NCBI GenBank assembly: GCA_002269645.1
Contig: NIVC01001272.1
Span: forward strand, 260,065 to 324,064
Direction of reading: 5' to 3'
DNA length: 64,000 bases
Source: Macrostomum lignano
Lineage: Eukaryota
In this document: one piece after another, positions 11,258 through 28,740 of the stretch
Layout of the letters: every line of letters starts with the position of its first letter
How positions within the stretch are numbered: the first letter of the stretch is position 1
Position numbers and translations under genes: made by a program
The notes under the pieces: model-generated
What the model was told of the DNA's origin: nothing
Databases searched by the model: none
The model's input: only the letters and a program-made list of their open reading frames with translations

Positions 11258-13946
11258 AGTCGGACTTAATTTTATGTTTCACAATTTAATTAGCGGAAAA
11301 ATTGACCGAGAAGTAAACGTATCTCAAGCTTCAAATCTCACTAAACTACTCACCAGTAATATGATTGCGCGTTTATTATTATAATTTTATTTATTTATTC
11401 AATGCTTGCCGTTTTCTTTGGTGCAATAATTGTTGGATTATTTAATGACTAGCCGAGTTGCTGTGCTCTGTCCCCAAATACCAATTCATTTTTATTCTAG
11501 CTAAATTTTTAAAAGAACATTATCACAAAATTATTTTGTCAATTTTTTCTACGAGAGTGTGTCAGTAGTATCTGCTGAGCGATGTCGCCGAAATTCAAAA
11601 AAGGAATAACTATATTTAATTTTTTATTTAAATTACTTTATATACTTTATAAACAGTTAATTATATTACTATTATTATTATATTTATAAAAGTACACCTA
11701 ATTATATTTATTGCTTTCTAATGATGAACTTTTTTGTTTGTATTTTTTTGTTTTTTTTTTACCCTCGACAATGCAATAATATGTTGGTATTAGTATGTAT
11801 GGCAGTTTATTTATTTATTAAACAGTTTAAACCACGCTTATAGTTTTTTATATTTATAACTTTACCTAGTGAGTTGCAATCATTTCTATATTTAAGCTAT
11901 AATTAGTAACTCTTATCTACCTGTAGTTTTGCATGAAATTTCAGCTTCTATGAATGGTCAGTTTTTGAAATATATTAACACTATTTACTATAATTATTAT
12001 TATTGCATACGCGACTAAAAGTTTATTAGGTCAATTTCTAAGAATTTTTTTGCGTTTGATGTCGTTACGTTTTGATTTCTTTTTTAGTACTTTGACAGCT
12101 GTGTCATGAACTTGGCCCAAAATTACCACTGAGAATCGCCCCTCAACCACCCTGAGAATCGCCTCTAAGCCATCCTGAGAATCGCCCCTAAACCAACCTG
12201 AGAATCACCCCTAAACCACCCTGAGAATCGCCCCTAAACAACCACTGAGAATCGCCTCTAAGCCATCCTGAGAATCGCCTCTAAGCCATCCTGAGAATCG
12301 CCTCTAAGCCATCCTGAGAATCGCCTCTAAACCACCACTGAGAATCGCCCCTAAACCACCACTGAGAATCGCCTCTAAGCCATCCTGAGAATCGCCTCTA
12401 AGCCATCCTGAGAATCGCCTCTAAACCACCACTGAGAATCGCCTCTAAGCCATCCTGAGAATCGCCTCTAAGCCATCCTGAGAATCGCCTCTAAGCCATC
12501 CTGAGAATCGCCTCTAAACCACCACTGAGAATCGCCCCTAAACCACCACTGAGAATCGCCTCTAAGCCATCCTGAGAATCGCCTCTAAACCACCACTGAG
12601 AATCGCCCCTAAACCACCCTGAGAATCGCCCCTAAACCACCACTGAGAATCGCCTCTAAGCCATCCTGAGAATCGCCTCTAAACCACCACTGAGAATCGC
12701 CCCTAAACCACCCTGAGAATCGCCCCTAAACCACCCTGAGAATCGCCTTTAAACCACCCTGAGAATCGCCTTTAAACCACCCTGAGAATCGCCTCTAAAC
12801 CACCCTGAGAATCGCCTCTAAACCACCCTGAGAATCGCCTCTAAACCACCCTGAGAATCGCCTCTAAGCCATCCTGAGAATCGCGTCTAAACCACCACTG
12901 AGAATCGCCCCTAAACCACCACTGAGAATCGCCTTTAAACCACCCTGAGAATTGCCTCTAAACCACCCTGAGAATCGCCTTTAAACCACCCTGAGAATCG
13001 CCTTTAAACCACCCTGAGAATCGCCTCTAAACCACCCTGAGAATCGCCTCTAAACCACCCTGAGAATCGCCTCTAAACCACCCTGAGAATCGCCTCTAAA
13101 CCACCCTGAGAATCGCCTCTAAACCACCCTGAGAATCGCCTCTAAACCACCCTGAGAATCGCCTCTAAGCCATCCTGAGAATCGCCTCTAAACCACCACT
13201 GAGAATCGCCCCTAAACCACCACTGAGAATCGCCTTTAAACCACCCTGAGAATCGCCTCTAAACCACCCTGAGAATCGCCTCTAAACCACCACTGAGAAT
13301 CGCCCCTAAACCACCCTGAGAATCGCCTCTAAACCACCCTGAGAATCGCCTCTAAACCACCCTGAGAATCGCCTCTAAACCACCCTGAGAATCGCGTCTA
13401 AGCCATCCTGAGAATCGCCCCTAAACCACCCTGAGAATCGCCCCTAAACCACCCTGAGAATCGCCCCTAAACCACCACTGAGAATCGCCTCTAAGCCATC
13501 CTGAGAATCGCCTCTAAGCCATCCTGAGAATCGCCTCTAAACCACCACTGAGAATCGCCTCTAAACCACCCTGAGAATCGCCCCTAAACCACCCTGAGAA
13601 TCGCCTTTAAACCACCCTGAGAATCGCCTCTAAACCACCCTGAGAATCGCCTTTAAACCACCCTGAGAATTGCCTCTAAACCACCCTGAGAATCGCCTCT
13701 AAACCACCCTGAGAATCGCCTCTAAGCCATCCTGAGAATCGCCTCTAAACCACCACTGAGAATCGCCCCTAAACCACCACTGAGAATCGCCTCTAAGCCA
13801 TCCTGAGAATCGCCTCTAAACCACCACTGAGAATCGCCCCTAAACCACCCTGAGAATCGCCCCTAAACCACCCTGAGAATCGCCCCTAAACCACCCTGAG
13901 AATCGCCTTTAAACCACCCTGAGAATCGCCTCTAAACCACCCTGAG

Positions 13947-26500: not shown

Positions 26501-28740
26501 TCCTGAGAATCGCCTCTAAACCACCACTGAGAATCGCCCCTAAACCACCACTGAGAATCGCCTCTAAGCCATCCTGAGAATCGCCTCTAAACCACCACTG
26601 AGAATCGCCCCTAAACCACCCTGAGAATCGCCCCTAAACCACCCTGAGAATCGCCCCTAAACCACCCTGAGAATCGCCTTTAAACCACCCTGAGAATCGC
26701 CTCTAAACCACCCTGAGAATCGCCTCTAAACCACCCTGAGAATCGCCTCTAAACCACCCTGAGAATCGCCTCTAAACCACCCTGAGAATCGCCTCTAAAC
26801 CACCCTGAGAATCGCCTTTAAACCACCCTGAGAATCGCCTCTAAACCACCCTGAGAATCGCCTTTAAACCACCCTGAGAATCGCCTCTAAACCACCACTG
26901 AGAATCGCCTCTAAACCACCCTGAGAATCGCCTCTAAACCACCCTGAGAATCGCCTCTAAGCCATCCTGAGAATCGCCTCTAAACCACCACTGAGAATCG
27001 CCCCTAAACCACCACTGAGAATCGCCTCTAAGCCATCCTGAGAATCGCCTCTAAACCACCCTGAGAATCGCCCCTAAACCACCCTGAGAATCGTCTCTAA
27101 ACCACCCTGAGAATCGCCCCTAAACCACCCTGAGAATCGCCTCTAAACCACCCTGAGAATCGCCTTTAAACCACCCTGAGAATCGCCTCTAAACCACCCT
27201 GAGAATCGCCTCTAAACCACCCTGAGAATCGCCTCTAAACCACCCTGAGAATCGCCTCTAAACCACCCTGAGAATCGCCTCTAAACCACCCTGAGAATCG
27301 CCTCTAAACCACCCTGAGAATCGCCTCTAAACCACCCTGAGAATCGCCTCTAAACCACCCTGAGAATCGCCTCTAAGCCATCCTGAGAATCGCCTCTAAA
27401 CCACCACTGAGAATCGCCCCTAAACCACCACTGAGAATCGCCTCTAAGCCATCCTGAGAATCGCCTCTAAACCACCACTGAGAATCGCCCCTAAACCACC
27501 CTGAGAATCGCCCCTAAACCACCCTGAGAATCGCCCCTAAACCACCCTGAGAATCGCCTTTAAACCACCCTGAGAATCGCCTCTAAACCACCCTGAGAAT
27601 CGCCTCTAAACCACCCTGAGAATCGCCTCTAAACCACCCTGAGAATCGCCTCTAAACCACCCTGAGAATCGCCTCTAAACCACCCTGAGAATCGCCTTTA
27701 AACCACCCTGAGAATCGCCTCTAAACCACCCTGAGAATCGCCTCTAAACCACCCTGAGAATCGCCTTTAAACCACCCTGAGAATCGCCTCTAAACCACCA
27801 CTGAGAATCGCCTCTAAACCACCCTGAGAATCGCCTCTAAACCACCCTGAGAATCGCCTCTAAGCCATCCTGAGAATCGCCTCTAAACCACCACTGAGAA
27901 TCGCCCCTAAACCACCACTGAGAATCGCCTCTAAGCCATCCTGAGAATCGCCCCTAAACCACCCTGAGAATCGCCCCTAAACCACCCTGAGAATCGCCCC
28001 TAAACCACCCTGAGAATCTCCTTTAAACCACCCTGAGAATCGCCTCTAAACCACCCTGAGAATCGCCTCTAAACCACCCTGAGAATCGCCTCTAAACCAC
28101 CCTGAGAATCGCCCCTAAACCACCCTGAGAATCGCCTTTAAACCACCCTGAGAATCGCCTCTAAACCACCCTGAGAATCGCCTCTAAACCACCCTGAGAA
28201 TCGCCTCTAAACCACCCTGAGAATCGCCTTTAAACCACCCTGAGAATCGCCTTTAAACCACCCTGAGAATCGCCTCTAAGCCATCCTGAGAATCGCCTCT
28301 AAGCCATCCTGAGAATCGCCTCGAAGCCATCCTGAGAATCGCCTCGAAGCCATCCTGAGAATCGCCTCTAAGCCATCCTGAGAATCGCCTCTAAGCCATC
28401 CTGAGAATCGCCTCTAAGCCATCCTGAGAATCGCCTCAAAGCCATCCTGAGAATCGCCCTTAAACCACCCTTAGAATCGTCTCTAAACCACACAGATCGC
28501 CGCTGTTTTAGTTCAAAATGACAAACACTTCACTGAAGCGCTTCATTCTCTGATGCTCATTCAGTCGTGACAGCCACTTGACTCAAAATATATTGATATT
28601 ATAATCTCCATACAGTTACAAAAACCGCTCGGTCAGGTCTCGGTCAGAAAAAGGAAGTAAAACGCAAAACAAACTCAAGAATATATATTGTGTACTCAAG
28701 CGACCCACACGAAGCACTTTCAGGCAGTCTGGCGGGACTC

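Follow-up and report, generated by a model that had tools for sequence, protein, structure and literature searches.

We analysed a 64,000-nucleotide stretch of the genome of the flatworm Macrostomum lignano (contig NIVC01001272.1, positions 260,065 to 324,064; hereafter the window), in which a long array of a 23-bp tandem repeat is interrupted by two transposable elements (TEs), a long interspersed nuclear element (LINE) and a DNA transposon of the hAT superfamily. The array is flanked on the left by a gene for a Utp12-domain protein and on the right by one for a ZIP transporter. This arrangement is real, correctly located and ordinary: the two elements probably represent independent, recent and untargeted insertions into one large minisatellite array of a very repeat-rich genome. 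Literature searches found no published description of the hAT element, the LINE or the 23-bp satellite.

A 23-bp array interrupted twice

The original prediction, made from the letters of the sequence, described a 9-kb array of 23-bp units that had absorbed two young elements. Tandem Repeats Finder (TRF) and unit parsing bear out the array, which consists of three blocks totalling 9,084 bp and 391 units with the consensus CTGAGAATCGCCTCTAAACCACC; the LINE separates the first block from the second and the hAT element the second from the third (Table 1). Six main variants make up most of the units, and these variants and their higher-order patterns are common to all three blocks; homogeneity of the array on both sides of the insertions had been proposed. 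Higher-order blocks such as CEFCEBBBD recur, and paralogues of several hundred bp (791 bp) are about 99.6% identical. A long head-to-tail array, homogenised variants and higher-order structure together place the repeat among minisatellites or satellites.

Table 1. Features of the window (TIR, terminal inverted repeat; TSD, target-site duplication; ORF, open reading frame; APE, apurinic/apyrimidinic endonuclease; RT, reverse transcriptase).
Feature	Position	Strand	Description and basis
Satellite block 1	12129-13947		78 units; TRF period 23, 92% matches; unit parsing
Satellite block 2	18069-20410		101 units; TRF; unit parsing
Satellite block 3	23569-28491		212 units; TRF; unit parsing
hAT element, autonomous	20411-23568	+	3,158 bp; TIRs, TSD, copy comparison
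hAT TIRs	20411-20423 and 23556-23568		Perfect, 13 bp, CAGTGTTGCCACT
hAT TSD, left copy	20403-20410	+	8 bp, CTCTAAAC
hAT TSD, right copy	23569-23576	+	8 bp, CTCTAAAC
hAT transposase gene	20767-23316	+	ORF list; NCBI model mapping
hAT transposase exon 1	20767-22905		
hAT transposase intron	22906-22992		87 bp, GT..AG
hAT transposase exon 2	22993-23313		Followed by stop
hAT internal repeat	20647-20708	+	20 bp x3.2, CCCACAGAATCGCCCTCAA, satellite-related; TRF; alignment
Empty-site paralogue for hAT	26586-27376	+	Higher-order block in the same array; site near 26978
5'-truncated I-group LINE	13948-18068	+	4,121 bp
LINE ORF1 remnant	13950-14162	+	Last 70 codons and stop; tblastn with P0001
LINE ORF2, frameshifted	14162-17979	+	APE, RT, RNase H, CCHC; ORFs 14162-14734 and 14968-17979
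RVT_1 domain	15739-16497		In LINE ORF2; Pfam
RNase_H domain	17077-17463		In LINE ORF2; Pfam
LINE 3' tail	18052-18068	+	Trinucleotide repeats, (AGT)n = (GTA)n; (AGT/GTA)6
Candidate LINE TSD, upstream copy	13933-13947	+	TAAACCACCCTGAGA; read from sequence
Candidate LINE TSD, downstream copy	18069-18083	+	TAAACCACCCTGAGA; read from sequence
Utp12-domain gene	9198-10052		ORF, left of the 23-bp array; Pfam
ZIP transporter gene	29421-30539	-	Right of the 23-bp array; Pfam
Third transposon	48963-50857		~1.9 kb; splits a 43-bp array (halves 48030-48962 and 50858-51623)

The hAT element and its copies

The hAT element is complete, with perfect TIRs, a perfect TSD and an open transposase gene, as originally described. 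Counted from the first ATG, its two exons encode about 820 codons. The transcript-based NCBI model PAA70018.1 (P0121) comes from contig NIVC01001272.1 of GCA_002269645.1 (Mlig_3_7), where its locus and the window are 100% identical; aligned to the window, it spans 20803-23313 and leaves a single 87-bp gap. The 725-aa ORF had no match in an exact look-up, the annotated product being a partial model of 808 aa in two exons.

An exhaustive search retrieved 3,234 homologues of the protein. A CCHH finger, D212, D273, C304xxH307, R366-W367 and E620 are invariant in the 39 full-length homologues, 17 of which match the Pfam domain Dimer_Tnp_hAT (the window protein itself is sub-threshold, E=0.019). The family profile matches Hermes transposase in the PDB (4D1Q, 2BW3; E=2.2e-16) over the region of the second D and the E. 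A profile built from five sequences gave no match in the PDB, and an AlphaFold model from a five-sequence alignment had a pLDDT (predicted local distance difference test) score of 43, too poor for a fold search. The signature of the 39 homologues, the 17 domain matches and the Hermes profile match establish that the element belongs to the hAT superfamily. Like Hermes, hobo, Ac and the animal hATs of the BED-finger/DUF4371 type, it has an 8-bp TSD, short TIRs starting with CAG, an N-terminal CCHH finger, the D, D (with E, the DDE residues), CxxH, RW and E motifs and a C-terminal hAT dimerisation region. Unlike them, it encodes a protein that falls below the Pfam thresholds, has an extra C-terminal coiled-coil exon and carries a three-unit internal repeat related to the host minisatellite. 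It is a new, autonomous and probably active member of the superfamily.

Four copies were recovered from Mlig_3_7 via members of the protein cluster, namely the window copy and those at loci L002, L003 and L004. The other three are 99.6-99.7% identical at the DNA level, and the 13-bp TIR is identical and perfect in all four. The TSDs elsewhere read CCTCCCAC (L002) and ATCAAAAG (L003); the L004 copy (7608-10766) has no TSD, and its flanks, CTGGCAAT and GTACACTG, suggest recombination between copies, a flanking deletion or misassembly. Each of the three is surrounded by unique DNA and has as its neighbour a nuclear receptor gene, an Iwr1/Robl pair or an RNF213-like gene; nowhere in the 55.5 kb of L002-L004, hAT copies included, does the satellite motif occur. 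Only one of four copies thus sits inside the satellite, and the suggestion that the hAT element might target it is refuted, because three near-identical copies occupy unique DNA beside unrelated genes, with other TSDs or none. The array itself preserves the counterpart of the empty site: when the two flanks are joined minus one copy of the TSD, they align ungapped over 791 bp with the empty-site paralogue in block 3, with three mismatches.

The internal repeat of the hAT element resembles the satellite. Over about 2.5 units the alignment scores 15.5, against 9.0 +/- 1.1 for shuffled sequences (0/200 reach 15.5), and at the unit level z = 5.8. The repeat lies in the part of the element common to the four near-identical copies. 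Two small arrays containing CCTGTAGAATCGCC, at 8355-8606 (26-bp unit) and 8616-8726 (21-bp unit), are also satellite-related (z = 7.2 and 4.7, respectively). Apart from these two, no array in the window is akin to the focal one; several have a period of 23 bp with an unrelated sequence. The alignment of the 20-bp, threefold repeat with the satellite unit (z ~6) recalls TE-derived satellite DNA; unlike in such cases, no homology links the sequence on either side of the array to the hAT element. An origin of the array from a resident hAT copy was rejected, the array flanks being no closer to the element than is shuffled sequence.

The LINE and its family

The second element carries APE, RT and RNase H domains in ORF2 and a separate ORF1, which is the make-up of I-group LINEs; a TAATG stop/start overlap joins the two frames, and a 3' untranslated region (UTR) precedes the tail. 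It is 5'-truncated, lacking the 5' UTR and about 0.8 kb of coding sequence, since full-length ORF1 in other copies (gene models P0012, P0134 and others) begins with MDKSKPPDTAREP, some 265 codons upstream. The frame of ORF2 shifts by -1 at 14606-14611, a C6 run that would have to be C7 for the frame to stay open; the missing base may be a homopolymer error of the PacBio-based assembly. The copy is young, as its protein is 99% identical to other copies (ORF2 matches M. lignano entries at 99-100%), and it is not autonomous. The original description of a young, near-intact LINE thus holds for its age and fails for its intactness, most of ORF1 being missing and ORF2 frameshifted.

The two halves of the APE domain match the TRAS1 endonuclease (1WDU) with E=0.045 and 8.5e-11, and the C-terminal half matches that of R1Bm (2EI9) with E=6e-5. 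The only named relative among the matches is Lian-like, of the LOA type. RNase H is shared by several clades of the I group, Loa and R1 among them (PMC4640811). With Lian, R1Bm and TRAS1 the element shares the arrangement of ORF1 and an ORF2 with APE, RT, RNase H and CCHC, the TAATG overlap, the APE matches and a simple-repeat tail instead of poly(A); in contrast to other I-group LINEs, tails of (GTA)n or (GAT)n are peculiar to its lineage. On domain content it is an I-group LINE, with LOA, R1 and I as candidate clades.

At the insertion site, the upstream flank ends with CTCTAAACCACCCTGAGA and the downstream flank opens with TAAACCACCCTGAGA. The tail junction proposed earlier, TA/AACCACC, is as predicted, with the (AGT/GTA)6 tail abutting TAAACCACC. 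The junctions can be read either as a 13-15 bp TSD or as an 8-10 bp target deletion, and paralogous blocks fit each reading at 97-99%; because the target is a tandem array the two are indistinguishable, with a slight edge for the deletion in the comparison of paralogous blocks. At either end the junction is uncertain by one or two nucleotides, a sign of microhomology.

Copies of the LINE family in M. lignano were compared as UniRef and MetaClust gene models, which come without DNA, and 3' flanks were read in sister families. Well over 100 ML2 gene models contain pieces of the LINE fused to unrelated genes (sphingomyelinase-like, MFS, TDP2-like, C1GALT1-like, lectin and globin among them). In P0093, P0014, P0038, P0006 and many M. 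lignano UniRef entries, pieces of the LINE ORFs are chained to neighbouring genes, with the GTAGTA tail and an internal site apparently used as splice donors. Because the ML2 models chain the LINE to its neighbours, UniProt entries named for host domains contain LINE sequence. Model P0130 runs from the LINE into a different satellite of 23-bp period. Read-through C-termini of the gene models were not used as evidence on 3' flanks, as they are explained by tail variants or by GTAGTA as a predicted splice donor.

Two sister families were found in metagenomes, in JGI 3300040775-79 (50% and 48% aa identity to ORF2) and in an ENA assembly (57%); a scan of metagenome contigs with the LINE alignment yielded only relatives at 26-48% identity, mostly 30-36%. 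A fragment of a sister LINE is deposited as a protein (P0324, MEE4247892.1) of a Kangiellaceae bacterium metagenome-assembled genome, an assignment that probably reflects eukaryotic contamination of the bin. The sister copies (L005, L006, L041-L046) end in (GAT)n and the M. lignano family in (GTA)n, so that trinucleotide tails appear to be a trait of the lineage. The flank after the tail starts with AG in three of five copies of the first sister family. The 3' flank could be read in six of these copies; no two of the flanks agree and none is like CTCTAAACCACC: they comprise a GTGA-rich stretch (L005), unique DNA in two cases (L041 and L044), A/T-rich TTCATT repeats, a 28-bp minisatellite and a CTCACCT-type repeat. 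L042 (on both sides), L043 and L046 are the copies that abut tandem repeats. Judged by these flanks, targeting of the satellite by the LINE family is unlikely.

Insertion sites and competing explanations

The original prediction placed both junctions at the same position in the unit. The 3' junction of the LINE does fall 3-5 nt inside the 8-bp TSD of the hAT element; the bond differs, however, and a junction falls within an 8-bp stretch of a 23-bp unit by chance with a probability of about 0.3-0.4. The general target consensus of hAT elements is nTnnnnAn. Two of the 23 registers of the unit fit it, CTGAGAAT and CTCTAAAC, and two of the three hAT TSDs seen fit it fully. Among the 6-mers of the unit, TCTAAA has the highest A/T content, and CTCTAAAC overlaps that patch. 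Both enzymes may thus have been drawn to one A/T-rich patch by their target preferences, without any recognition of the satellite.

We favour two independent, untargeted insertions, which could have come about as follows. The hAT element would have inserted by cut-and-paste, duplicating the 8-bp CTCTAAAC. The LINE would be a dead-on-arrival, 5'-truncated copy produced by target-primed reverse transcription, its endonuclease having presumably placed a bottom-strand nick in the single T-run that the unit contains (5'-GGTGGTTTAGAG-3'), within the same A/T-rich patch, where 1-2 nt of TA could have provided microhomology to the (GTA)n tail. Neither element would recognise the satellite as such, and both may persist in the array because insertions into non-coding DNA would cost nothing.

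The density of tandem repeats fits this picture. Tandem arrays make up 50% of the non-TE bases of the 64-kb window, the 23-bp array alone accounting for 16%, and TRF finds dozens of arrays with unrelated units, more than 30 different ones between and around the genes. Genome-wide, simple and tandem repeats amount to 15% in M. lignano (PMC5730564). A third insert, probably a non-autonomous DNA transposon, has the termini CCCGCC..GGCGGG and, next to them, numerous inverted CCGGAT motifs in subterminal position; it splits a 43-bp array, which fits the view that arrays in the window simply collect insertions. That the array serves as a tolerant site, or safe harbour, is compatible with all observations, but such tolerance is not special: tandem arrays fill half of the non-TE window, and another of them is split by the third transposon. 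Elsewhere in the window, three long open frames (497, 1830 and 240 aa) on the minus strand at 52111-60937, all rich in Ser, Thr and Ala, look like exons of one large gene; the 1830- and 497-aa frames, the two that were scanned, have no Pfam match.

Several points weigh against untargeted insertion. The evidence on LINE flanks comes from sister families and not from M. lignano copies; two random insertions in the window would end up in a common array with a probability of only 0.03, although this figure is post hoc and many windows were scanned; three or four of the six sister flanks, as well as P0130 in M. lignano, adjoin tandem repeats and could hint at a general bias; and the satellite-related internal repeat of the hAT element is left unaccounted for.

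TRAS and SART elements target telomeric repeats, and Waldo targets ACAY repeats. A comparable specificity of the LINE for the 23-bp satellite had been suggested for the window; its endonuclease would then recognise CTCTAAACC. Such specificity would be in keeping with the sole copy seen, which lies inside the array and meets it at TA/AACC on the 3' side. As in TRAS/SART, or in Waldo, Mino, Kibi and Dong on microsatellites, a copy in a tandem repeat joins it at a fixed point of the unit. In those families, however, essentially all copies occupy one position of the repeat, whereas here a single copy was seen and the sister flanks are heterogeneous. Among solved structures, the APE domain is closest to the sequence-specific endonucleases of TRAS1 and R1Bm, but the PDB holds no endonucleases of LOA, I or Jockey elements, so that this match does not discriminate between clades, and the only named relative is the LOA-type Lian. 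The R1 clade is among the groups rich in target-specific families (PMC4640811). Against this specificity stand the six different flanks of the sister families (50% and 48% identity), none of them unit-like, the abundance of the family in models fused to many different genes, the different 23-bp satellite next to the P0130 copy and the absence of the focal satellite from the other M. lignano hAT loci (L002-L004). We regard it as very unlikely.

A bias of the trinucleotide-tail lineage towards tandem arrays irrespective of their sequence, through DNA structure, chromatin or survival in safe harbours, would account for the window copy inside its array, for the sister copies next to tandem repeats and the GTGA-rich stretch, and for the continuation of P0130 into a satellite. 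The numbers are tiny, though, and the tandem-repeat background of the sister families' host genomes is not known; in M. lignano such repeats are abundant in the genome and more so in the window, metagenome contigs break in repeats, which biases the flanks seen, and the flanks of L041 and L044 are unique. This bias is unlikely, and it is similarly doubtful that a preference of the lineage for any minisatellite array combines with a shared ancestry of the 23-bp satellite and the hAT internal repeat. It is extremely improbable that chimeric joining in the PacBio/Canu assembly created the array with its TE junctions. The genome is difficult to assemble (PMC5730564), the window and L001 (100% identity) come from the same assembly and so do not confirm each other independently, and the ORF2 frameshift sits in a homopolymer; yet the hAT TSD is perfect and its joined flanks reproduce the paralogous block without gaps, the higher-order unit pattern continues across the LINE, and the LINE shows the typical hallmarks of target-primed reverse transcription, namely a tail, 5' truncation and a TSD-sized overlap.

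If the lineage did favour arrays in general, this would add a sequence-independent safe-harbour behaviour to the known repeat-specific LINEs, and in combination with shared ancestry it would amount to feedback between TEs and satellites in an unusually minisatellite-rich genome. On untargeted insertion, which we prefer, enzyme preferences and a single A/T-rich patch suffice to bring two elements into the same phase of a short unit, with no special targeting. The locus adds two families to the record: a young I-group LINE family whose tails are (GTA)n, and an apparently active, low-copy hAT family with intact ends, copies that are nearly identical and a gene model based on transcripts. The latter may be of practical use, since transposon-based transgenesis is sought after in M. 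lignano, a flatworm model.

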